From NCBI GenBank assembly GCA_964234715.1, contig OZ174275.1: a DNA stretch of 64,000 nucleotides. The stretch is one strand, 5' to 3'. Shown piece by piece: positions 60-59,050 of this stretch. The number at the start of each line of letters is the position of its first letter. The stretch's first letter is position 1. This DNA comes from Podarcis melisellensis (lineage: Eukaryota). Both the position numbers and the translations under genes were made by a program. The notes under the pieces are model-generated. The model was given only the letters and a program-made list of their open reading frames with translations. It had not been told where the DNA came from and made no database searches.

Positions 60-1632
60 CTGTAGGTGGAAAGTGATTCCTCTGATAAATTACATTGCCC
101 TTCTTCAATCACTCTACTTTCACCATTCCTTTAATGTTTAACGTAACCTCCCTGCATCTTTCTCCCTGTAGACCTGTGAGTGATAAATGTTTCTAACTAG
201 CCTTGATCAAATCTGTCACTTGCAATTTCAGGTACTATATCAATTTAGTCTTTCAACATATAATGATTTATTTTAAATTTTCTATGACTGGGAGGCAAAT
301 TGGAAAACACACTGAACCATTATTGCCAAATGTCTTTGTGGTCTAAGGTAGCCTAATGTACTTAATTCTGGTTGGTTGCTGTATGTATTTACTAACAATT
401 AACAATAGCAAATTTTTAGAAGACCTTAAAAACAAAACAAAACCAGGCAATGCATTTCCTCCCATACTGCTATGCCTACAGGGTTTTTTCCTAGGAAAAA
501 AATAACCTTCTATGGCTTAATATTTGTATTAGCTTTTATAAGTCTTTCTATTCTTTAATTTCAGAGCCCACTGACCTGGTTAACAAAGAGCAGATACAAA
601 TGATCGGAGCAGCCATGTGGTATAGTTTTTACTGGGCTATGCTATTCTAGGAGGCAGGTGGTAGTAGAGGGGTTTCAATTCTGAATGCATGGCCATATGC
701 TTTTAAAAAGCTCTCTTGCTATAAAAATAGTATGCCACGGAAAAGTCTAGGCTCCTTGACATCCTACTCTCTGACATCCTAATATTGCCTGATTTTTCAC
801 AAAAGGAATGATCATTTTACAGGTATGGTGTATCCAGTTATCCAGAATCTTGAAATGGTTTATTCATTTTATGTTCTATATCCTAATTTTCTACCTCACG
901 GGCGTCAGCACAAGTAGCTGCAATGGAAAACAGACAGACAGAATAACTAAAGCAAATAATAATAAACAAAGTGGACTAAATAACAGAAGAAACCACGAGA
1001 AAAGAGACAAATTAAACAAACCATTTGTCTGCTGAAATCCTGTGGAGCTGGGTGGTAGTACTGAGGTGGTATAAAAATGCTGCTAAAGTGGGAGTTGAGC
1101 TAATCTCACTAAGAAAGGAACTTCATATCCCAAGTGCTACCAGAAAGAAAGCTCTCCCTTGTGTCATCACCAGTCAAATCCCTGGGATTGACGAGACATG
1201 GAGAAGGCTGTGCAGATGCTAGGCCATATAGGGTGTTACAGGGCTCCTCATCTACAGCTGGAATCTAGAGATAAATGAGAGTCAATTTGTGGAAAGTTTG
1301 TGGGGTCGTGTTTTTTGGGGGATGAACAGCTTACATGCTCATTGCAAGGTGCTTCCAGCTACTCGGTGCTCCTTGCAAGTTACTTTTTAATGTCAGCAGG
1401 ATTTTATATAGCAGCTTGTGATGTGCCATAGTAAAAGGGATGAAAAGGGATGCTGTTTGGAAAGAGAAAACAGCCACACTGTACATATTGTGAGGGCATG
1501 CTTGATCGTGGCATAGTAAAGTGTGTTCTTTGTGCTTTCCTACTAAAGAAACTAAGATGGGAGTTTGAATGAAATGAAATCTACATGCCTTCACAATATC
1601 TATATCTCAATCTACATTTCCAAAAACCTTAC

Positions 1633-4600
1633 CTGTGTAAAAGCTCTTTCATAAAGCTGTCTTTTCCCGAGTGTGTGGTGGCAGAGCTGTTCTTTTGTTC
1701 GCACCCAGTTTGGCTGAGGTTATTGTGTGTGGCTTTTGTCATTTTTTTCCCTTTTGGAACACTGTCTAAAATACCACAATTCAGAGTTTTCTTATTTATC
1801 TCGTTTTCTGCTTCACAGTGCTGTTCAGTCTTCTTTTTGTCTTTTCTTTTTTCCGATTTTGTTTGCTTGCTTCCAAAAGCTAAACCCTTCGGCTCTTTCT
1901 TTTCTATTTTTACTTTAGAAACATCAGCTTTTCTACCACTCAAGGCTGGGAGCTTACTCTTTCGAAAACCAAACCAGCTAGCAATAGAAGGCCCCCCACT
2001 CTTTTGTTTAGGCTCAGTGGTAGGGCATTTGCTCTGCCCTTGTTCCTTCTGCATATTTTCCTGGATGCACAACATGACTTTTTCTTCTATCGTGGGCTGT
2101 AAAACAGATGAAGCTGAAACCTTCTCCAAGGCTTCAGATGCCTTTATGCAGGCTTCTTGCAATACTACCTTGGCTGCTTCGTGTTTATGAGGAGATTGTG
2201 TGCTGTCCAGATTTTTCTGAAGTGGCAAAATTTGTTCTGATGAAATACTAGTTGATGACTCCAATGCCATTTCTGCTTGTGTAACACTTTTTCTGCTTAC
2301 TGGTTGATGCTTTGAAATTCCGCTGGCCTTTTCATCATGGAAAGATTTACTTTGGACATCTCTCTGAGATGGTGATTTGTTGTCCTCAGTTTTTGAAATG
2401 CTGCAGAATAAATCCCCCTTTGGAGACATATGGAATGGTAGTTTGCTTGGGCTACCAACTTGACTGCTGGAACTACTCATGCTTGCAGAAGAACCCTGTC
2501 TAGAATAAGAAGTTTCTGGAACTTTTGTCGTGTTTGAAACCGTATCTGACATCACTGCTGAACCAGGAACAGCTCTGATTTGTAATCCTTCCACAGCAGA
2601 GTTTTGCCTCGTTAAAGAATTCCCTCTTTCAGATGTGTTTGTTATGATCTGGGTCCGAACTTTTCCTAACCCTTCTGTGGAAGGTATAGGTGACTTTTCC
2701 CCTGTGTGAATACTGAAACTTTGACTTCGGGCCTTTGCTCCATTCATACCAAGAGCAGGCTTCAAGTATGCCTTACTACTAGAAGAAATGGATCTCTTAA
2801 CTAACCTGTTTTCCAACCCATCTCCTCGTTCTATTAAGCAGCAAGTCTCAGGTGAAACAGAGGAAGCTGGATTCATACCAAGATCCCCAGCAAAACTTTC
2901 TTTTATTCCATTCTCAGCACTCCTTAATTCAGTGTCAGCTACGTCTATGGTGGTTTGAGCTAAAGATTCACCCTGCCTCCGTTTGGATGAATTCACACAG
3001 CTTTTGGAGGCTGCATTCATACTGTCTTTTTCCTGCTTCCCTGGTATAGTGGAACTCTTTCTTAGGAGCTGAGGAGATTTTATGAGTAATTTAAGTCCTA
3101 CAGGCAGATGTGGTTTCAGACTCTTTTCTGGTATATTTCCAGCATCACTTCCCTGAGACAACAGTGATAATGGGGAGTGATTAATCTGAGGCAGAAAAGG
3201 TTTCCCAATCATTGCTGGCTGACAATCTGGTGATGTGGAGAATCTGTTTGGAAATTTATTTTTCTGAGGTACTTCAGTGTCCTTAGGCAGTAGTCCATTT
3301 TGCATTAGATCTGTATCTTGTGACGTGCAGTCTGGGGACACATCCTTGGAATTACGTTCTATATTATTGCAGGATACTGATTGGTTTGAGGTTTTAGGAG
3401 GAACTTTCTTTGTAAACACTTTGGGAATGACTTGGCACATTGTGGAGGGTTGCTCTGATATGCATTTGCTTTGTGTAAACACCTCTCCTTTCTCATTGAA
3501 GTGATTTAATTTGACTTTATGTGTTGAAGGGAGCTTGTTAGTTGGCATTCTATGCACATTATGAAAAATGGACATTGAGGCCGTTTTCAGTGGTGACATG
3601 ACTGGACTTTTTACTGTCTCACTGGGAATGCTTGCTCCTGGCTTATTGGGTACAGGTGGTGAATAGTCATAGTTTGGTCTTATCAATAGTGACGTTGACC
3701 TGCCTGGAGGAGGTGGTGGTGATGGAGATCTAGCTTCTACAGCAGGCAAATCACAATGGATATCTCTAGTAGGTGGTTCTTCACAGTCAATTGACTCAAT
3801 AAGATGTTGATGCAATGAAGCTGATTCTGGGACCTGATTCTTGGGCCAATCTGTTCTGTCAAGCATTTTAGAATTTTGCAGAGGGTGCACCCTTGAAATA
3901 AACAAATCTACTTTTGAATCAGTATTCTTAGTGGGACTCTGCACTTTTTTGAATCTTGAACATTTTACAGATTTCTCCAGTGTCATAGGACAGTGTGATG
4001 AGGTGCTAGTGGAATATTCATTCACTGTGATATTTGTTTTTTGTGGCGAGAACTTATCTCTGCTCGGAATTTTTGTCAATTTTTGGTTTTGGTTACTGCC
4101 TGCCTGCATACAAGATGGAGACCTAGGCTTGGAAGAAATACTGCAAACTGGCTTCATTAGCTTTTGCTGTGGGATGTTGTGAAACAGGGGTCTTTTGGGG
4201 AGTAAAGGAGACTGACTGTTGCATGTAGTAGGGTCAACTGCATGCTCATTCTCTAAGTTATTTGGGAGAGTCTTTCTCTCAATTTCATTATCAGGTGCTT
4301 GCAAAATGCTGTAGTTCTTAGCTTCCATTGCTTTTTGGAAATTAACTATTCCCTGAGGTAAACATTCAGTGTATTCTGCATTGGGCCCAGTACATGAGTG
4401 GTTGATTGAAATTTCATTTCTAGTTACAGTGACAACTCCAGATTGATGTGAACTGAATTCGATAGGTTTGCCATCTTCAGCATCAAATATAACAGTAATG
4501 CATTCTTCTGAAGAAGTCTTCTTTATAACTTTTTGTTGCTTAATGAAATTACATGCCTTTGGCCTAATGCCCGAGTGAGTGAGTACCTGACTTGCTTCTT

Positions 4601-5399
4601 TTTCTGAAGATACATGCTGGCAATTTTCCTTCTTTACACGCACATCAGAATTCTCTGTGTGCTTGTCAACAAAAGGAGTTAATGACAAATCTGATGGGCT
4701 TTTTTCATCACTGCTTTCTATATGTAATTCGTCCAGGATTTCATTGTCATCAGTATCTGAAAGGTGTAAATTAAGGTCTCTCCAGCTTATGCTAGCAAGA
4801 CTTTTATCTATTTGCAACACAGGCAGCTTCACATTTGTGCAAGATTTTCCTTTTGACTGAAATTCATTGACAAAACTAGTCAGTTTTTCAGGTCTCTCTT
4901 TTGAATTAAAATAAGAACCTCTTTCTGGCAAGTGCTTTCTATCAGGCTCCCAACCAAATAGGCTGTCAGAAACGCTGTGAGTTAATTTATTACAATAGTG
5001 CCTACAGTCTTTGCTCGGTACTTCATACAGTAATGCTAAAGATGAAGACTCATCATCCGCATCCTCATGTGAATCTGAATCATACACAAAGTTTTTCTGG
5101 TGATCAATGCAAATGGCCCCCATTTCCTCTGGTGTGCAATGTACCTCTTCTTTATGACTGCTGCACTTAATGCCAGGGGAGTATATTCCTTCATTAGAGT
5201 CCATGCAATCTTTGTATCCCCATTTGGATATAACAGAAGAAGGCGGTTCAAGTAATATTTTGCGTTTCTGTAACTTCTTTAGCCCTTCCAAAATGTGGTT
5301 TTCCTTGATACGAGTTGGAGGTAGATCATCAGCAGGACTGGAAAGGTTGCTGGGGAGCGAAGAACCAATGCTTATTCTTTTATCCCAGCTCACTGACGA
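1633..5399 (-). CDS. NCKAP5: NCKAP5 giant internal exon (3767 nt; SSVSWDKRIS...FMKELLHR), phase 0-2, Ser/Pro-rich
   Basis: Corresponds to ORF 1629..5393; acceptor cttttaaaatcag|TCG and donor CACAG|gtaagg; conserved blocks KWGYKDCMDSNEGIYSPGIK, KTSSEECITVIFDAEDG, SPSPPPPPGRS, KVRTQIITNT, PTIEEKVMLCIQEN, ASWFGFRKS. Confidence 0.97.
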
Positions 5400-5631
5400 C
5401 TGATTTTAAAAGAAGTAAGAAAGAGTTATTACCACAGAAATTAACAAACATTACTAAAAAAAGGACAATGTTGAGCTACTGACTTCTCTCTCATTGCTAT
5501 GGTTGTACATTGTACAACCATGCTAAAATGGCCACACTGTGGAGCTTGAGAAGGCCTATGGTTTTTATAGTATTTTTTTCCTACAGATAGTTCTGTTACA
5601 ATGCTATAATAAAAAGAGGACCTGGCATACA

Positions 5632-5768
5632 AGGGATCAAGGTCTGCAGCCCTCCAGATGTTGTGGGACTACATCTTCCATCAGCTAAAACCACTGGCTA
5701 TGCTGGTTGGGGCTGAAGGGAGTTGGTAGTCCAACAACATCTGGAGAGCACCGTGTTGGCTTCCCTTG
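5632..5768. mobile_element. hAT-type palindromic MITE (ccctccagatgtt...ggactaca family)
   Basis: Inverted ctccagatgttgt / acaacatctggag arms; same family as 18187-18323. Confidence 0.7.
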
Positions 5769-5972
5769 TTGCTCTCGTCAATTTTGTGTTCAAATTATGT
5801 GGCATCACATACAAATATCTTAAAATATTATAAGCTACTAAACTCATCCTGTGCGCCTCCATCTGGCCCATTTCAATGAGGCCTAGGAATGTAGACTCTA
5901 GCTAAAAGATTGCTTCTGTTGCTGGAGGTGCCTACAGTGTATTTCATATTTCAGTAAATATTAATAAGAACA

Positions 5973-6166
5973 GGTGTGGGGAGTGTTAACAAGAGGGGTA
6001 GTACCTCTGGTGGGGGACATGCTGTGCTCCTAATGGGCTGGTACCTCCACCTTTGGTCCCCACCCTGTACTCAGCTCTCACCTGTAGCTCCTAGAAGCTG
6101 TCTGCATGCAACAGTGGCCACACCCCGGGAAATTGCTTAGATTGGCCAGCTAAACCAGGTGAGGGT
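5973..6166 (+). ncRNA. Candidate HDV-like ribozyme at the 5' end of the retroelement (partly degenerate)
   Basis: P1 GGTGT 5973-5977 / ACACC(CC) 6120-6126; P2 6074-6084 / 6156-6166; L3 starting TCC 6089-6091 able to pair with GG 6127-6128; GCTAA 6149-6153 just before the P2 3' strand. Confidence 0.6.
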
Positions 6167-6697
6167 AGCAAATGGGTCTCAAACCCTCAGTGAGTTAGGG
6201 ACTTCCCCTGCATGTAAAGGCAGGCTCTGGTGGATTGAGTGGACAAGACCAATAGTGGGTCCAGTGGTCAAGAAGGCGGTTTCTGCACATATTGTAGAGG
6301 CAAGTGAGGGGGCTCAGGTAACTTGGAAAGAGAAGGAAAACTCTGATCCTAAACCTCTGCTGTTTGTGGGATATATTCGGGCAAAGAAAAGGCAAAGGAG
6401 TAAACCCTACACAAGTCTGGAGTGGAGTCCCTAAGATGGTTGGATGGCGCCTTGTACGCCTCCTTCTGGCAACTCCTGCAGCTAAGCTGGTGCCAAACGT
6501 ATTGCTCTGCTTCCCTCTGGACCACATCAGCAAGGCTGAGAGAAGGGTCTTGTTGTCTGGGCAGCCCAAGACCTCCCTACACACTGCCCAGGCTTGTGCC
6601 CCGAGGAGGTCAATTTGGTGCTGCTGATGCAGTGGTTCAACTTTATCCCCAGAGGTGCACTCCATTGCCTCTTGAGACAGACTGATGCCAACAACAA
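5973..6697 (+). mobile_element. Non-autonomous non-LTR retroelement, probably RTE-clade 5'UTR plus 3' end
   Basis: Perfect 10-bp TSD AATAAGAACA (5963-5972 / 6698-6707); short (CAA)n tail after GATGC; no RT ORF and no tRNA head. Confidence 0.75.
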
Positions 6698-6929
6698 AAT
6701 AAGAACAAAATAGCATAAAGGCTTGCTGGATCAGATCAAAGATCTATCTTGCCTAGCATCCTGTCACACAGATGCCTATTTGCAACTGTTAATGTAAATA
6801 TATATTTATGAAGTGTGTTTTTGATATTTATTTGCTGGTGTTGTGAGCTGCTTTGAACTGTTATTTGGAAAAGTGTCACATAAATAAACTTGATGATGAC
6901 AATGACAATAAATGAACCTATTTCATTAC

Positions 6930-7121
6930 CCTTTTACTGCATGCCTTCCCATCATTCCAAGTGTAGGAGGAGCCACTGGAATATTCACTGCAGGCACTTG
7001 ACAGAGAGAGCTCACTGCTGCTGCAGCTGCTTCGAGGATAAACTCGGTGAGGCCCTGTCATATTTAACTGGCTCTGGCACTTCAAGGCAGGTACTCCAGA
7101 TCTGATATTCTGCTGACATTC
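6930..7121 (-). CDS. NCKAP5: NCKAP5 coding exon (ECQQNIRSG...SSSELSLSSACSEYSSGSSYTWNDGKACSKR), phase 0-0
   Basis: tctttttctttttttag|GAATGT...AAAAGG|gtaatg; 192 nt open; conserved SELSLSSxCSEYSSGSSYTW motif. Confidence 0.95.
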
Positions 7122-7314
7122 CTAAAAAAAGAAAAAGAGAGAGATTGCTTTGTTTTATGGGTTAAAAAATTCCATACCACATTCTTATAAGAAAACAAAA
7201 CAGAAGCCCACATTTGCTGTTCATGCTGATATAAATAATTATTGAATGAATATTAAAACCACAGTGCTCATATTTCTTACCTATTATGAGATTAAAATAT
7301 CTAGAAACTTGCCA

Positions 7315-7353
7315 GTTGTTGTTGTTGTTGTTGTTATTATTATTATTATTATT
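7315..7353. repeat. (GTT)n(ATT)n microsatellite
   Basis: Read directly. Confidence 0.95.
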
Positions 7354-8399
7354 AAAATACATGCACATCCTAGTATTCAAGCTGGCCTTTCAATGACAAT
7401 CTGTTTGAAGTATGCTGTGTTTATTAGCAATGTGCTCCAGAAAGATACTGGAAACAAAGTTAAGCCAGTACAAGAACATCTTGACAAGTGCATTATATCC
7501 CCACAACGTAACAGATGAGGCCCTACAAAGTGGACAAGGTAAATTAATTTAGTGTCCCAACCAGAATGTCCACGGAGAATGGAATCTCTCCATTACAGTC
7601 TAATTTTGGTTTCCTATCTAGTTCAAAGCTTTGTCTAAGAAAGTCTCTGATGCAGGACAATCCATCTTTGTGTCACCGTCCGACAGCTGAAGCCTCCTGC
7701 TTATGCTATTTATTGACACTTTATGGCTGCCTTTAGTACTTGTGTAGTTATCGGCCCTCTCCAAATGCAATCTCAGCTGCTGTGACTAAATACCAGCTTC
7801 AAGGAAGAGAATAATGAAGAAAGAGAGTGGTGCTTTAGTAAAAACATTAAACCTTTGCTGGAGTTTGTGGAAGCATTTAATTTCTTTCCAGGCAAATCTT
7901 CTGCTTCCTAATATGGCAAAATATTATTGAAAATTCAGAATCTTCATGAATATGCGGCTATGAAATTCTTTCAACTTATGCAGAGGCACTGCATAACTTA
8001 TAAGTTATCAATAACAACAAGACTACATTTCCTTGACATTTTGCAACAAATTTCATTAATCTCAAAACCAGTTTTTCTCAACAACAAGAACTGAAAGCTG
8101 TGGAGGTGGATGCTTATACTTCTCTATCCCATTAAGAGTAGACACAAACCACCTAAATCCAGAGTCCCAAATGGATCTTCTGCATAATTAGGATTCCCTT
8201 CTTCATTAAAATGTTTTTCTTTCCCTTTCCTTAGAGGTGCCATTCTGAGTTGATGGGGTGAATGCTCACAATCCTGAAAAATCACTCAGGTTTGTCATGG
8301 ACTAAAATACTCAAGGTGCCTTGTGTGTAAATATGAATCTCAATCTTCATAGGCAACTTTGGGAAAATGTTGGACATGAAGTCCTCAGGATTGTAGGTT

Positions 8400-9100
8400 T
8401 TGCATGAAATTGGCTTCACTGTTCCATGCCTATTGAGCAATGGAGGAAATATGCATGGGTGATGACAGTGACACTTGACCTAAAGGCTACAGTGCTCAGC
8501 CTCTGTCTAATCAAGGGTTTAAAATCAGTTTATTGATGCTCATTTAGCTCACCACTGTAGCCAGACAATGGTCTAGAGCCTGCACAACCACTCCTGATTC
8601 AGATGTTACGGAGAAATAAAGCTATGCGTTATCAGCATGCTCCAGATTCTCTGATTCTCAACGGCTTCATATAGATGATAAAAAGCACTGAGGGAAAAAT
8701 AGTGCCCTGCAGCATCCCATAACATAGATGCCAAGGGACTGAGGAGCATTTTCCCAATGCTACTCTCTGGAGCCAAACCCGCAGGAAGGATCAGAACCAC
8801 CACAAACTGTGCCTGACTGTCACCCCACAGAACTGGTCTAGGAGAACACTATGGTCAATGGTATCAAAAGCTTTTCCCTTGTCCTGATCACTCTGGCTAA
8901 GGCAAATTCAGTCTCAAAACCAGGTCTAAATTTGACTGTAATGGATCTAGATAATCAGTGCCATTCAAGACTGTCTGCAGTTGCTCTGCCACAGCCTCTT
9001 CAATCACATTCTGAAGAAATGGCATATTAGCAATCAACCAGTCAATAACCATCACAGACTACGAGATCCGAGATGGGCTTTCTGAGATGGGCTTTCTAAG
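8400..9100 (-). mobile_element. Old L2/CR1-clade LINE reverse-transcriptase fragment; boundaries approximate
   Basis: Degenerate RT motifs in correct order: DYLDPLQS (~8930-8960), AFDTIDH (8851-8871), YGMLQGT (8701-8721), HADN for YADD (8628-8639). Confidence 0.8.
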
Positions 9101-14219: not shown

Positions 14220-14625
14220 GGGTGGTATTCACTGCTAGTCCTACTCAAGAGTAGACCACTGAAATTAATGGACATGAATCACAGTGCCTGGAGACAGACA
14301 GACAGACAGACAGACAGGTCATGTATCCACCGCAGTGGCCAGAGGAGGAATGGCCATTGGGAAGGGTGCGGAGAGAAGAAACGCAATAGTGCATCAGCAG
14401 CAGCAGAACCGGACACTTTTATCTGCTTACCTGAAATAAAACATGTTTCTCCTGTATCGGTATCTACAGCCACAGCAGGTGCTATAATTCTCCAATGGTT
14501 TGACTTTACCCATCAAAGCACACTTTTCCATTGTCTCCCAAGACTGACAGATGCCAACACGACTAGCTTATGTACATTAATTTCAGTGGGTCTGCTCTGA
14601 GTAAGACTTATCTAAATACACACCC
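14220..14625. mobile_element. MITE with ~55-bp imperfect terminal inverted repeats
   Basis: gagtagaccactgaaattaatg is inverted relative to cattaatttcagtgggtctgctc; ends gggtg / caccc. Confidence 0.6.
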
Positions 14626-17426
14626 ATCACTGGACCTTCCAACCTCCTTACCTTTGCTTAAAAACTGTTTGGAGAGGGGCATTTTGGATTGGGTTTGCGG
14701 TGCTGGAGAGCAGGGGTTTAAATCTTTCCCTTGGCACCATTTCCCCACTTGAAATACTATCCTTGAAATTGGTATGGGGCACAATGTGATGGAGTTGTAG
14801 GATAGATGAAGTGGTATTTCAAATCATGGAAAAGATGGAGGGGGAAGGGGTTAACTGCTTTCCCACATCATTACTACCCTGATCCAAATTCACCCCTCCT
14901 GCACCTGCTTTTAAGAGGAGAAAAAGAATTTGAGAGATCAGATCATGGTTTTCCCATATTACCATTGGAAGAAAGTCCCCTGTGTACTAGGGCCTATCAT
15001 GCCCCCTTCCTATTTTTCACCAAAGTTCTGTTGTATAATGTAAACAACTATGACTTAGTCACCCACATTTTACAAATGTGTACACTAGCAGAGAAGTCAC
15101 AGTGAGACATAGGACTGGACGTTTTGTGACAAAACATTGCTAATTATGTTAAAATTGTTTCAAAAACATCTTAGGAATCAACTAGAGACTGCTTTGCCTC
15201 ATTCACAGTTGAGTTGGTAGATCAAATATGGAGCCTTATGCTTTCTTCTGAAGGGTTTTCTTTGAGAAAATAAATGACTTGCTAACTTCACGCCAACACT
15301 ACTGGTCCTGCTCAGAGTCTAGATAAAGTGGAAAGGTCACAGCGACACTAGGCATTGCAGTAAGATGGGAAAGAGAACAGTGATACAGAGTGGGTAAGCT
15401 CTGAGGAGAAGTTTAAAAATGAGACTGTGTTCATGTGGGAGGATAAAGGAAAAGCTTACTTAGTCACAAGGACAATTTGGCAAAAAGCCCAAACTTTTAA
15501 GTGAATAAAACTAACAGCTCAATTGAATACATGTCTACTCAGAAGTAATGTCATTTAGTTCAGTAGGACTTACAGTACTGTAGCCTAAGGAGTTAGCAGG
15601 GATGAGGCACACATTTCACATTGCAATAAAGATTTGGCGTTGGCCAGTATTGACATTTTCTATGGTTTCTTTAAAAATAATATACACCTTTTTATGTTAT
15701 ACACAGACACATGTACTCCAAGTTACAATGATTATTGAGCAATAATTCAGGAGAATAAAGGAGGCTTTAGGCCAAGCACAATAAACGAGTTTAAAACATT
15801 TCTAATTCTATTCTTTTGTACACACTGTGTATGAAGCCATATATAGTATAGAACTGACATTTAAGTGAGAACTCAATACCTTGTAACTTATATCATGCAT
15901 TAGCAATACTCGTAAGTGGCAAAAGCCCAAACAAAAGGTGCATAGTTGGCCCAAGGCTTTTGCCGCCCAGAAGGACAAGATGGTGTGCCTATTCTATTTA
16001 CAGATGCCAACTGGACTGGCAACTTTAACCTTACTTCAGCAATGGTGATGGGACAGCATCCCCTACCACACCCGAGGGCAGCAGGGTAGTCTGGAGTAGG
16101 GACAGCACAGGCCATTGGGCACACACAGGTGTATAATCTTTACCATTGCTTCCTCCCACCACCACCTCACTATGCCTAATGTCATTAGCTTCCCCTATTA
16201 AAATTCCCTTGTGATTCTCAAGCATGGTAACTAGCTTCCCTGTGGAAATGTAGGCAATCAGCAATAAAAGAGGTCACACCTCTGCTGCCTCTTCAGGTTA
16301 ATTCAAGTGAATTGGACCAGAGTACACAGTACTCTTAAGGCAGTGGTTATCCAAGCACCACACTGGTGTAGCTTGAGAGGATGGCAAGTGCTGTGGGAAG
16401 ATTCAAGGACAATCAATATTATATTCTGGGAATGATTCATGTTCTTATGTAGCTCCATTGTTTTATTCTTTCTGGATAGTCCACTATCATATTAATTAGT
16501 AGTTGTGCTTTACGTTATAAGTCAAGCACTTGCTAGAGGTTTCTTTTTGTTTTCCAATGTATTTATTATCAATTTTAAAAAATGGTGTGCCATTTTTTTT
16601 GTTCTGAAAGTGTGGCTCAGAGAAAAAAAATTGAGAGCCACTGTCTTAAGATTAAAAAGAAGACTTTGACATTGACAATTAAAGGGCAAGTCTGTCTATC
16701 TACTGTGAAATTTCCTATCTATGGGGTATCATTCCATCTCAAATTCCTTTTTAAACGTATCATGGACCGAACAATTTTCCATTGAGTTTCCAGCTATTTA
16801 TTCATTCCAAAGACAACACAACTCTCCAAGTACTGATTGTATTAAATATCAATTGTTTTAATTGCCTTGATTCTCCCCCTACCCACCCAGGATCTTTAAA
16901 TTTGGGCACTAGCTTAGCTTAGTATCCAGAAAAGAGATATGCTTCCCTTCACACATTGTGAAGGAATACCTTCATGTATTTGTCAGAAGTGTGGGAACAA
17001 CAGATCTTCTGCTATCTCTTTTGTGTGTCAGTTATCCAAGTAGAAACTGCAAAGCAGACAAAAGCTACTGTGGATGTCTTCTACCTAGAAGAGTAACACA
17101 CAAGGTGGAAATCTGGTGTCTTTTTTGTGGTCCTTGCCTCAGATCCTTTGAACAGTTTCCTTGTCTATCTGTAATATTATTTTTGTCTTAGCCAACTGTA
17201 TCCTGCACAGTATGAAAAAAGCGAAGACCTCTCCCCTTTGCTTTCTGTAGCTGAAATCAAGGCAGAAGTCTAGATGCAACAAGGGAATAAATTGGTAATA
17301 GTTTTCAAATGACCACTGGAATAATTATAAATGTCTAAATTTAACATGATTAGCACCACTACCTGTATTATAATATAAACAGGAATAACTGTCATATCAG
17401 AGACTGTCTCTTTTCCCTTTTAAAAT

Positions 17427-18186: not shown

Positions 18187-18323
18187 CAGGTATAGGCAAA
18201 GTCAGGCCCTCCAGATGTTTTGAGACTACAATTCCCATCATCCCTGACCACTAGTCCTGTTAGCTAGGGATGATGGGAGTTGTAGTCCTAAAACATCTAG
18301 GGGGTCGAGTTTGCCTGTGCCTG
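18187..18323. mobile_element. hAT-type near-palindromic MITE
   Basis: TIR caggtataggcaaa / tttgcctgtgcctg; 8-bp TSD CCCTAGAC / CTCTAGAC; arms gactacaattcccatcatccct / agggatgatgggagttgtagtc. Confidence 0.88.
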
Positions 18324-39379: not shown

Positions 39380-39742
39380 GGACACAGGTGGCGCTGTGGG
39401 TTAAAGCCTCAGCGCCTAGGACTTGCTGATCGAAAGGTCGGCGGTTCGAATCCCTGCGGCGGGGTGCGCTCCCGCTGCTCAGTCCCAGCGCCTGCCAACC
39501 TAGCAGTTCGAAAGCACCTCCGGGTGCAAGTAGATAAATAGGGACCGCTTACCAGCGGGAAGGTAAACGGCGTTTCCGTGTGCAGCTCTGGCTCGCCAGA
39601 GCAGCAATGTCACACTGGCCATGTGACCCGGAAGTGTCTCCGGACAGCGCTGGCCCCTGGCCTCTTAAGTGAGATGGGCGCACAACCCCAGAGTCTGTCA
39701 AGACTGGCCCGTACGGGCAGGGGTACCTTTACCTTTACCTTT
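39380..39742 (+). mobile_element. Sauria SINE, full length
   Basis: Head ggtggcgctgtgggttaaa with B box ggttcgaatcc; body gtgcaagtagataaatagg; (ACCTTT)n tail; TSD TAGGACCTTTCCAG (39367-39380 / 39742-39755). Confidence 0.93.
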
Positions 39743-41938
39743 AGGACCTTTCCAGTTTTGCCTCTGCTGCAATCATGGAAATTGCTCTTGACTTTATCCA
39801 TGATGTGTTCTCCACATTAGGTGTGTCTGGGGAAGCCTAGGACTGCTTGCATTAATTAAAAATATATAGTATGGCAAACCAACCATTATTTATTTATTAT
39901 ATCTATGCTATGCCTCAAAACGTACATTCTCTGGGCATAGTACAAATAAAAAGTGAATAACAACTAACAATAAGCCATGCTACAACCAAAGCACAAAAAG
40001 TTTGAAAGCCAATCAGCACAAGAACCCAAACAGAAAACCACAATGAAATATTGCAGACAGCACAGAACTAAGGCTACATTCAGGCATGGGGTTTAAATGC
40101 ATCAGTTTTAGGGGTTATAATGCCAGCACTTTATAAAATTCCTTTTAAACTGCAGTACCTGTTGCATTATGGAACAGTAGGGTTTTTTTCTATTGATACA
40201 TCGCCATGTCAGGCTAAACTTTAAAGCCCAATTTTGGTCACATGAGCAGTGGTGGTGTGATCATGAAAACTATGAGAAAATTACAACAGAAAACTTTTGT
40301 GATTTTCTGAGTTTTAAATGGATTTTTCTGGAAGCAATTAACATGGAAATGAGTGCTAAATGTCCACTAGATTCCTAGAAGTGGCTTTTATGTCATGTGA
40401 AAATGAGAGAACAGCCATCAAATGCATACTTTCAAACCACCATCTATACCACAAGGACGTTTGACCATATCTTAAAAAGTCCTGGGAGAACAACGAAGTC
40501 TTAACATGGCACCAATGTGCCCACAACATGGGCAATAAGCAAGTTTCCTGGGGGACACCATAGCCGACAGGAGAGTGTCTGTAATACAGGCATGTACTTA
40601 CCCACTTCTGAATATTTTATCTCCACTACAAAGACATATTTGGGAGGGGGGAGATGTCAACATGTTCGTGCTGATAGAAGCCAACATAATTCTTTATCTT
40701 TCAACCTCTTGTAATGTTTAATGATATTTGAATCAGAGGTCAGACTCTAGGGTGACCTACTCCATCTTATTCTGTCAGGTACTGAACAATTAATTGCCTA
40801 GAAGTGTTGCCATATATAATAATGTCATGGAGGCAATTTACCCCTTCCTGCTACACTGTTAACTGCTTCCATCTAAACACAGCCCCTTTAAACATATCTC
40901 TCAAAATTGCTTCCAAAGATAATGCCAGAATATATAGGTTAACCTTTGTGGATTCCTAAAAATGGTAACCTGGCAGCAGAAGACCATGCAAAATGCAGAT
41001 TAAAATGAAATGAAGTGAGACATCCAAGGGAAGCATTCACTGAACAAGTCAATTAATGAATTGAACCTATCAAGCCAGATACATACTATTAATAACTGGA
41101 ATGGTGTTTGATCTTCATCAGTTTTATTCAGAATGCAATAAAAACATATGAGACTGGCAAGCATGAAAATAGCTACTTAGGCTCAATCAGGATTCAGCAG
41201 ATTTCATTTTTTTGAATTGTTGACCAGTGTTGGGGACCACAGGATCAAATAGGGCCAAAATTTGTCACTGGATGGGGATGATGCAATGTGATAATGTAGT
41301 GTTACTTTTACATGGGGAATTGAACAGGCAAAAGTTTGGGAAAGCTGAATGACAGGTTCCACTGACATCCCTCAGCCACTCAGCTCAAGAATATCAGTCA
41401 GCACATCATAAAGTGCTTTTGAAACACACCTCAGTTTCAAAACGGTATGTCATGAACCACAGGGGGAACAGTCATTCAGAGAAAACAGTTGTAAAACTTC
41501 ATTAGGCTTTCAGGACTAGTTCCATAGCTTTTTGGATACAGGCCAACATGCTCGGAGAATGGTCTAAAATACAGGCCAATTTCAACGCTCCAGAGGAAAG
41601 AACAGCAATCTATAAGCCATAAGGCTACATAATAGCTTTTCACATTCACATATTGCAAAATGTTTTTCAAATGTCAGTATATGTGGGGGAAAGATAGAAT
41701 ATCACATTAACATGAAGTATTTCAGAACAACAGTTCTAAAATATTTTCATCATAGGACTCATTAAGAGGTTTTAAATTTTAGTTCTGAGTTGGTTCTACC
41801 TTTCGTCCTATTCTAGAAAAGAAAGAAGTCCATAACTCATTGTAATCATGTTGACTGGGTTCACACATCACATTAGCTGATTTGAGTTACTGCTTTGTGT
41901 ACAGTATAAATTTCAATCAAGTATGTTTGTATGTAAAC

Positions 41939-48805: not shown

Positions 48806-49210
48806 CTAGAACAGGGAAGGAAATCTGAATTAGAAAAAAACCCCCCACATAATTCAAATATTAACTGAAAAGTCAATGAATATTATAATGCATGTGACAG
48901 AACACCATCCTTCTGTTAATGCCTGTGACAGAACACTACCCTATTCTGTTAATAGGAGGAATCCTATTTGCTAAAGGCTACTTGATCTTATGGAGGCCTC
49001 TGCTGACAGAAGGATGCAAAGTGCTTTTCACTTATCTCCTGCCCTCCTGTACCTTCCACAACAACTTCCACACAGCACAGTAGCATCCCTCAACCACCTG
49101 GAGCAGATTTTCAGGTTAGAAGAAGCAACAAAGAAGAGGTGAAATTGGCAACACCATATCCCTCCTTCCATCACTAGAAGTGTTGGCCAGATTAAAAGCC
49201 CTCCTGCCTG

Positions 49211-49559
49211 TAAAGGTAAAGGGACCCCTGACCGTGAGGTCCGGTCGTGGATGACTCTGGGGCTGCAGTGCTCATCTTGCTTTATTGGTCAAGGGAGCTG
49301 GCATACAGCTTCCGGGTCATGTGGCCAGCATGATTAAGCCGCCTCTGGCGAACCAGAGCAGTGCACGGAAACGCCATTTACCTTCCCGCTGGAGTGGTAC
49401 CTATTTATCTACTTGCACTGCATGCTTTGGAACTGCTAGGTTGGCGGGAGCAGGGACCGAGCAACAGAAGCTCACCCCATTGCGAGGATTCGAACTGCTG
49501 ACCTTCTGATCGGCAAGCCCTAGGCTCTGTGGTTTAACCCACAGCGTCACCCGCGTCCC
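49211..49559 (-). mobile_element. Sauria SINE, full length
   Basis: taaaggtaaagggacccctgacc...ggtttaacccacagcgtcacccgcgtccc; imperfect TSD around tcctgcct. Confidence 0.93.
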
Positions 49560-56014: not shown

Positions 56015-56595
56015 ACAGGGAAGGTTCTCTTGGACCAGGCCAATGGTCCATGTAGCCCAGCACCCTGTGATGGCAGCCAACAAGATGCCTTTGGGAGTAT
56101 TTGAGAGGAAAAATAGTCTCCACAGCTGTGATACTCAGAAACAGGTATCCAAAGGCATGCAGTCTCCAACAATGGGGATAGACCATAGCTATGGTGACAA
56201 GCAATCATTAATTGCAGGTGGCACTGTGGTCTAAACCACAGAGCCTAGGGCTTGCCGATCTGAAGGTCGGTGGTTTGAATCCCCGCAACGGGGTGAGCTC
56301 CCATTGCTCGGTCCCTGCTCCTGCCAACCTAGCAGTTTGAAAGCATGTCAAAGTGCAAGTAGATAAATAGGTACCAATCCGGCAAGAAGGTAAACGGCGT
56401 ATCCGTGCGCTGCTCTGGTTCACCAGAAGCGGCTTAGTCATGCTGGCCACATGACCCGGAAGCTGTACGCCGGCTCCCTCGGCCAATAAAGCGAGATGAG
56501 CGCTGCAACCCCAGAGTCATCCACAATTGGACCTAACAGTCAGGGGCCCCTTTACCTTTACCCTTATGGTGACAAGCAACCATTAATAGCCCCCA
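56015..56595 (-). mobile_element. Old SINE/CR1-tail fragment that hosts the 56213 Sauria SINE
   Basis: tggaccaggccaatggtccatgtagcccagcaccctg...gccaacaagatgcct; related fragments at ~6715-6780 (-) and ~53440-53610 (+). Confidence 0.6.
56213..56564 (+). mobile_element. Sauria SINE inserted in an older SINE
   Basis: Typical head, body and (ACCTTT) tail; 23-bp TSD 56190-56212 / 56565-56587 with one mismatch. Confidence 0.93.
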
Positions 56596-58519: not shown

Positions 58520-59050
58520 CATTTGCAGTTTGAATCTGTGCGACGGGGTAAGCTCCCGTTGCTCTGTCCCAGCTTCTGACAACCTAGGAGTTCGAAAGCA
58601 TACCAGTGGAAGTAGATAAACTGGTACCACTGTGGCAGGAAGCTAAACTGCATTTCCGTGCATTACGGCTTCCATCACGGTGTCCTGTTGCACCATAAGC
58701 GGTTTAGTCATGCTGGCCACATGACCTGGAAAGCAGTCAGTGGACAAACGCCGGCTCCCTCAGCCTGACGTGAGATGAGCGCCGCACCCCATAGTCCCCT
58801 TTGACTGGACTTAACCATCCAGGGGCAGCAGAGTAGCACAGGGGAGGTGCTAGCCACCATAGGGCGATGCTAGCTGTCCATGGGGGTGGGGCAAGCCACC
58901 CACTGGGCAGGGGCCAGCTGCCTCCCTGTCTGGAGGACAGCCATGACTGGGATGGAGGTGGCGGCTAGGGCGCCCTACAGGCCACGCGCCACACACGTCC
59001 CATGCTGCATCCCTTCCTCCACTACTGTCCCTTTACCTTTTACCTTTACC
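58520..59050 (+). mobile_element. 5'-truncated Sauria SINE interrupted by a 202-bp GC-rich insert (58826-59027)
   Basis: Body motifs agtagataaa and tagtcatgctggccacatgacc; the tail tccctttaccttt resumes after the insert. Confidence 0.85.

Follow-up and report, generated by a model that had tools for sequence, protein, structure and literature searches.

The 64,000-nt stretch of Podarcis melisellensis DNA analysed here (the window) contains a 1254-aa minus-strand open exon at 1629-5393 that carries an NCKAP5 domain (E 2e-51) and is the sole ORF of more than 200 aa. About 580 bp from this exon, on the plus strand and within an NCKAP5 intron, lies a 726-bp copy of a non-autonomous retroelement (5973-6698), which is therefore antisense to NCKAP5, as the original prediction had it. 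The copy is bounded by two identical 10-bp TSD copies (AATAAGAACA) at 5963-5972 and 6699-6708, which define the insert as 5973-6698 and its first base as G5973; a tail of CAA repeats and a high copy number are the further hallmarks of insertion. A domain scan of all ORFs in 5973-6698 returned no endonuclease, reverse transcriptase (RT) or any other Pfam domain, in line with the predicted non-coding nature of the element, and no autonomous LINE partner was found within the window. The assignment is based on the TSD, the read depth, the lack of Pfam domains and the match to a coral LINE (L010, see below).

The order of parts within the insert is a candidate ribozyme head, a lizard-specific stretch, a conserved module (6390-6635) and a LINE 3' tail that ends in CAA repeats (6659-6698), all on the plus strand. 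The 3' tail is common to the coral LINE and to a window fragment at 14493-14559, the sole piece related to the retroelement in the rest of the window, where no other copy of 5973-6698 was found. The second fragment as a whole (14320-14559), in which the same LINE 3' tail (..GACAGATGCCAACA) is 70% identical to 6630-6693, adjoins a (CAGA)n run, and a short look-alike of the tail is present at 16000-16039.

The family to which the copy had been assigned is highly repeated in these animals. Reads from two low-coverage DNA runs and from two RNA runs were placed on 5850-6800 at a likeness of 80%. Each DNA run contributed about 17,000 contigs to the retroelement stretch. Depth is single-copy up to 5977, lies 100- to 10,000-fold higher until about 6697 and then falls, and the loose read ends behind about 6697 disagree among themselves. 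RNA reads at least 99% alike numbered only 1 and 11 in the two runs, indicating that the locus itself (5973-6698) is nearly silent. The RNA reads, which come from libraries ill-suited to 5'-OH ends and, here, from an almost silent locus, showed no pile-up of 5' ends at 5973.

Fold of the 5' head

Direct reading and a scripted helix check located every string of the originally predicted HDV-like fold, and the nested double-pseudoknot strand order, P1-P2-P3-P3'-P1'-P4-P4'-P2', is present both in the window copy and in its coral relatives. The 5' strand of P1 (GGTGT, 5973-5977) makes five of five pairs with ACACC at 6120-6124; it corresponds to 5 of the 7 nt of the relatives (GGGGTGT), which bears out the suggested loss of about two G from P1. 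It is followed by a J1/2 of 96 nt (5978-6073; 95-97 nt in the relatives), structured according to RNAalifold, which for five sequences gave a consensus fold of 33 pairs, nine of them with changes on both sides. The hairpin previously placed in J1/2 (6009-6018 with 6056-6064) can pair, but the comparative fold gives its arms other partners. In P2 the two strands (6074-6084 and 6156-6166) form 11 of 11 pairs, two of which are G.U. The 5' strand of P3 (AGC, 6086-6088) forms two of three pairs with its 3' strand (GCC, 6117-6119, the same in all five sequences), as A6086 is mismatched with C6119, the relatives having GGC; the alternative AGC/GCT pairing for P3 has three of three.

L3 spans 28 nt (6089-6116) and starts with TCC, as noted originally. 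Its first six nucleotides, TCCTAG, are those of L010, and C6090-C6091 are the partners in P1.1. The extra hairpin occupies 6097-6115, with five of five pairs between 6097-6101 and 6111-6115, and a covariance model puts a 22-nt insertion directly after TCCTAG. The 3' strand of P1 (ACACCCC, 6120-6126) is again the same in all five sequences, as is the CC/GG combination of P1.1, for which the GG lies at 6127-6128. The weak P4 was correctly located at 6133-6148, while the gapless alignment to the relatives corrects its pairing to four of five, with a U.C mismatch at 6134/6147. J4/2 (GCTAAAC, 6149-6155), which contains the candidate catalytic C6150, is invariant in the five sequences.

HDV-like ribozymes have a P1 of 6-7 bp that runs from G1 at the cleavage site, and an unpaired catalytic C in J4/2. 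A candidate for such a C, C6150, is present in the window copy just before the 3' strand of P2. L3, at 28 nt and with an internal hairpin, lies outside the 7-8 nt of a short L3.

A pattern of this kind could arise by chance in an ordinary repeat when a loose descriptor is applied to many sequences. Indeed, a loose HDV descriptor returned about four cores in 128 kb (both strands), that is about one per 30-40 kb, the plain MFE of 5973-6166 is ordinary when compared with shuffles (z -0.58), and HDV-type Rfam models gave no match in window 4000-9000 at E values up to 10 and none at the gathering threshold in the whole window or the relative loci. An MFE no better than that of shuffles is, however, expected for a pseudoknot, and the blindness of the Rfam models is explained by the 96-nt J1/2 together with the pseudoknot. 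A P2 of at least 10 bp occurs in just one of the roughly four descriptor cores, the head at 5973-6166. Chance is further contradicted by the homology of the head to the canonical fold with which an intact LINE from another phylum begins, by the match of the window to a model built without it and by the presence of compensatory pairs, each described below; we regard this explanation as highly improbable.

An intact coral LINE with the same head, module and tail

A scan of metagenome contigs by alignment of the module peptide yielded six loci, among them L010, which contains an intact LINE of ~4 kb (1856-5878) with a 1048-aa ORF bearing Exo_endo_phos and RVT_1 domains. The 90% cluster of this ORF has 129 members, two of which are proteins of Pocillopora verrucosa. 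L010 matches the window retroelement three times by blastn, in the head (window 5994-6165; 62% identity, E 1e-6), in the module (73-77% identity) and in the 3' tail (L010 5842-5872; 87% over 31 nt). Alignment thus shows the first ~190 bases of the lizard element to be homologous to the 5' end of the intact coral LINE. With a single ~1000-aa ORF, a 3' UTR of ~50 nt and a length of ~4 kb, the clade of the coral LINE is RTE-like by build. The ORF of L010 lies between the module and the tail and has about 50 nt 3' of it. As head, module and tail are shared and an intact ORF separates the latter two in L010, the window retroelement is, by this comparison, an internally deleted derivative of an endonuclease- and RT-encoding LINE of RTE-like build. 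The coding region would have been lost from the LINE, and the 5' leader (head plus module) and the ~40-nt 3' tail, the part that such reverse transcriptases recognise, would have been kept.

Further copies of the Pocillopora-type LINE were found at L016 and L026, and a more distant lineage at L027. These three and L010 share no relation in their upstream flanks, their homology setting in exactly at GGGGTGT. All four copies thus begin with the same seven bases, which supports the original placement of the fold at the exact 5' end of the element. The first ~175 nt of the four non-lizard copies form a textbook HDV-like double pseudoknot, consisting of a P1 with seven of seven pairs (GGGGTGT/ACACCCC), a J1/2 of 95-97 nt, an 11-bp P2, a GGC/GCC P3, an L3 of 7 nt (TCCTAGC, TCCAAGC or TCCATGT), a CC/GG P1.1, a 5-bp P4 and GCTAAAC as J4/2. 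These data show that the 5' end of the coral LINE is a canonical HDV-like double pseudoknot of which G1 is the first base of the element, and it is through these homologues, with their 7-nt L3, that the proposed HDV type of the lizard head is upheld.

Several observations were made on the non-lizard loci. A T directly precedes G1 in four of four copies (L010 1855, L016 86, L026 3494, L027 2203), and in otherwise unrelated flanks this may reflect a preference at the target site or for the -1 nucleotide. The long ORF of L010 has its first ATG downstream of the endonuclease motif (..LATWNVRT.., L010 2640-2700); the coral LINE is probably translated from a start other than a conventional AUG, or in coupling with the leader. 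At L006 2400-2523 an L027-type LINE copy has lost its 5' part exactly up to the start of the 3' strand of P2, an example of how the ribozyme is removed by ordinary 5' truncation. The squamate-like contigs L005 and L007, which have the module, are 5'-truncated or differ upstream; at L009, L012, L013, L008 and L001 the module is present and neither blastn nor the covariance model R1 (see below) found the head. L028 and L029 repeat the L027 locus, and the head was not found in L030. Viral contigs scanned with the coral ORF gave no match, and none was obtained for the head when metagenome, viral and prokaryote-genome collections were scanned for its exact pattern. In protein-word searches a minus-strand 173-aa ORF had one match, in a Tara Oceans metagenome, and a 91-aa ORF beside the head had none.

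The conserved module

The module (6390-6635) has its homologue in the coral LINE in the segment that follows the ribozyme and precedes the ORF. It is widespread in animal and metagenome contigs, with blastn identities of 70-77% to L001, L005, L006 and L008-L014. The frame 6364-6627 matches 65 short predicted proteins (P0002-P0066), some of which are the tails of unrelated gene models, identifying 6390-6635 as a widespread repeat module; in the protein-word search the 87-aa module frame retrieved P0002 only. In many taxa one frame of the module (..LVPNVLLCFPLD..) stays open over about 90 codons. A conventional ORF1 was considered and rejected, as the coral copies lack an ATG in this conserved frame. 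The module is also found as a tail at the C-terminus of predicted proteins that have a PiggyBac-type transposase or F5/8 type C domain, and these are probably gene-model artefacts or exonised repeats.

Comparison of the lizard and coral folds

From the 3' strand of P3 through the 3' strand of P2 the window aligns to the relatives without gaps, and a single insertion of about 21-22 nt, after TCCTAG in L3, sets its core apart and constitutes the extra hairpin. As MAFFT misplaces this insertion, the pair tables were drawn from a structure-guided alignment. In the first six nucleotides of L3, the 3' strand of P1, the GG and J4/2, the window is identical to L010 at 22 of 22 positions, compared with 5 of 10 in L4 and the rest of J1/4. 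A covariance model (R1) of P2, P3 and P4 was built from the three Pocillopora-type cores only, with the window excluded. It has one significant match in the window (128 kb searched), at 6076-6164, which covers the full model span with 37.9 bits and an E value of 5.5e-8; the next-best match has an E value of 0.68.

Compensatory change is most evident in P2, where the lizard has C-G at position 9 (6082-6158), the Pocillopora-type copies have G-C and L027 has A-U, and position 1 is G.U versus U.G. Position 1 of P4 is U-A in the lizard and C-G in the corals. P1, P3 and P1.1 are invariant across the sequences and are hence neutral with respect to covariation, in a comparison that comprises only three lineages, fewer than a statistical test of covariation requires.

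The nested MFE structure of the coral core (z -3.16) differs from the pseudoknot. In this structure the P3/L3 strand pairs with the 3' strand of P4 and J4/2, extending P2 through an 11-bp helix (L010 1972-2018, core columns 13-59) that competes with P3, P1.1 and P4. It could thus be argued that the head is no ribozyme at all and that a plain nested stem serves the LINE leader as a protein-binding or translation element, its HDV likeness being coincidental. The low energy of the coral core agrees with such a role, as does the retention of 11, 10, 10, 8 and 9 of the 11 pairs in the five sequences, and the one strong covariation, that in P2, is common to both models. Changes in the alternative helix are, however, never compensated, its 5' strand is split by the lizard insertion, and the covariation at P4 position 1 is predicted by the HDV fold only. 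Nor would a nested stem account for the invariance of ACACCCC-GG or for the AAC of J4/2, and it ignores the perfect 7-bp complementarity between ACACCCC and the first seven bases in four of four non-lizard copies. We therefore consider the nested-stem explanation improbable; the alternative helix is possibly a misfolded or alternative state. The HDV-like fold remains the preferred reading of the head, and it is likely, judging from the comparisons above, that 5973-6698 is an old copy of a ribozyme-headed non-autonomous family derived from an RTE-like LINE. Against this interpretation stand the lack of an HDV-type Rfam match, even to the canonical coral head, the small number of lineages behind the covariation, the largely preserved nested helix, the absence of a pile-up of RNA 5' ends at 5973 and the 28-nt L3, which is perhaps incompatible with catalysis.

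Activity of the window copy and of the family

The window copy itself is almost certainly inactive, as read from its 5-bp P1, the A.C mismatch in P3 and the U.C mismatch in P4, in keeping with the inactivity that these same defects had led the original prediction to envisage. Several further changes, private to this copy, are located in 6126-6142. The lizard family letters given here are single majority letters from the reads rather than a family consensus. By this measure 6086 is G in 95% of family reads, which pairs with C6119 in P3, and the family majority also differs from the window copy at 6103, in the loop of the inserted hairpin, and at 6142, in the P4 loop. A consensus of the loose read ends has C at 6115 and T at 6126, with an agreement of only 0.58; with C at 6115 the inserted hairpin would be closed by a G-C pair. 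Position 6103 is covered about half as deeply as 6086, indicating that a large share of the family has the L3 insertion.

Whether lizard master copies with the hairpin in L3 still cleaved is about an even question on present evidence; cleavage by the version with a stem in L3 is favoured by the intactness of the core and by the high copy number, and disfavoured by the size of L3. It is conceivable that the head was active in the ancestral LINE, that the L3 hairpin abolished catalysis in the lizard lineage and that the family then spread without self-cleavage, the fossil head being kept as a part of the leader used by the proteins of the partner or by the ribosome, or by mere descent. Support for this explanation is provided by the length of L3, which is 28 nt in the window compared with 7 nt in the coral LINE and 7-8 nt in the HDV and CPEB3 ribozymes (bioRxiv 10.1101/2022.09.22.508989). 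L3 is, in addition, the most conserved part of R2 ribozymes, and a G within it matters for cleavage (PMC3774820; PMC6765202). As target-primed reverse transcription begins at the 3' end, a defined 5' end would also be unnecessary. Conversely, all 22 core positions outside the insertion are still identical to the coral LINE, and the insertion, at the 3' end of L3, folds into a stem of its own, which is improved by the C that the family has at 6115. Moreover, the 5' end of the window copy is at most 2 nt away from the predicted cut site, and very high copy number was reached with the insertion present. The fossil-head explanation is, on balance, rather unlikely.

Under the preferred interpretation, of a ribozyme-headed family, the life cycle can be modelled on R2, RTE and L1Tc. 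The element, with no promoter of its own, would be transcribed within longer host transcripts; the ribozyme would cut just 5' of G1, so that the RNA begins at the first base of the element, and target-primed reverse transcription, starting from the 3' tail, would turn the freed RNA back into DNA. By analogy, the lizard master copies may have been released from read-through transcripts at G1, and their RNA copied by the RT of the partner via the shared 3' tail. With its 5' end no more than 2 nt away from the predicted cut, the window copy agrees with a template RNA begun at G1. We propose, tentatively and as a combination that may well not hold, that the lizard ribozyme is active with a helix of ~20 nt in L3 and that the lineage possibly passed between cnidarians and squamates by horizontal transfer. 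The sharing of head, module and tail between lizard and coral suggests either horizontal transfer or unusually strong constraint on the leader.

Relation to known HDV-like ribozymes

HDV-like ribozymes are the known route by which promoter-less LINEs leave host transcripts. To our knowledge, the HDV-like examples described so far all have an L3 of 7-8 nt, and few have been reported in vertebrates besides CPEB3 and R2. As in both HDV ribozymes, genomic and antigenomic, and in CPEB3, L3 of the lizard element begins with UCCU and has G at the sixth position, and GG follows P1; the C-U-A-A of J4/2 is that of the antigenomic HDV ribozyme. In contrast to HDV and CPEB3, where L3 measures 7-8 nt and J1/2 is short, these parts measure 28 nt and 96 nt, respectively, in the window copy.

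In the R2, R4, L1 and RTE clades, non-LTR elements cut co-transcripts at the 5' junction by means of HDV-like ribozymes, and the fold tolerates long J1/2 loops (216-498 nt in R2 of silkmoths) and the absence of P4 stems (PMC3774820; PMC6765202). The lizard element resembles the retroelement ribozymes reported in 2011, as these are cited in PMC3774820 and PMC6765202, in its double-pseudoknot order, in having G1 as its first base, in the lack of a promoter of its own, in its intronic insertion and in the single endonuclease and RT ORF of its autonomous relative; it differs from them in the hairpin within L3. With R2 (PMC3774820) it shares a long structured J1/2, here of 96 nt, a variable or weak P4, the predicted processing of a co-transcript, and P1.1, P3 and L3 nucleotides near-identical to those of HDV. 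R2, however, inserts site-specifically into 28S rDNA and its cut often lies upstream of the junction, whereas the lizard family is dispersed and is predicted to be cut at the junction itself. Trypanosomatids provide known examples of non-autonomous derivatives with a retained ribozyme (NARTc and other L1Tc/ingi derivatives, PMC4035085), and these, like the lizard element, are short and non-coding and retain the 5' HDV-like head of an autonomous LINE. They belong, however, to trypanosomatids and to another clade, and the lizard derivative also keeps the leader module and a 3' tail of the stringent type.

The literature search returned no paper on such ribozymes in squamates and none that describes a stem inside L3. 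The kind of system itself is known. The family is a very abundant one in a vertebrate, with a head clearly derived from an HDV-like ribozyme, and the stem in its catalytic loop constitutes a natural test of the tolerance of the HDV fold; even the canonical coral relative goes undetected by standard Rfam models. How this LINE lineage spread across phyla can be approached through the catalytic core, which is nearly identical in the coral LINE and the lizard element. If the ribozyme is active with the helix in L3, the catalytic loop of the HDV fold would tolerate a whole extra stem, current descriptor and Rfam searches would systematically miss variants with a stem in L3, and such variants would amount to tens of thousands of copies in one vertebrate genome. 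The consequence for the annotation of the window is modest: an apparently dead copy of a repeat, lying antisense within an NCKAP5 intron.

Other repeats in the window

Two further types of repeat were observed in the window. A palindromic MITE-like hairpin is located at 5632-5765, with a second copy, 74% identical, at 18206-18282; the hairpin at 5632-5765 has weak, sub-threshold matches to microRNA precursors (mir-5408, 34.6 bits compared with a 90-bit cut-off). A tRNA-related SINE-like repeat is present in four copies (39399-39743, 49210-49554, 56214-56566 and 58525-58731), which occur in both orientations and are 79-92% alike.
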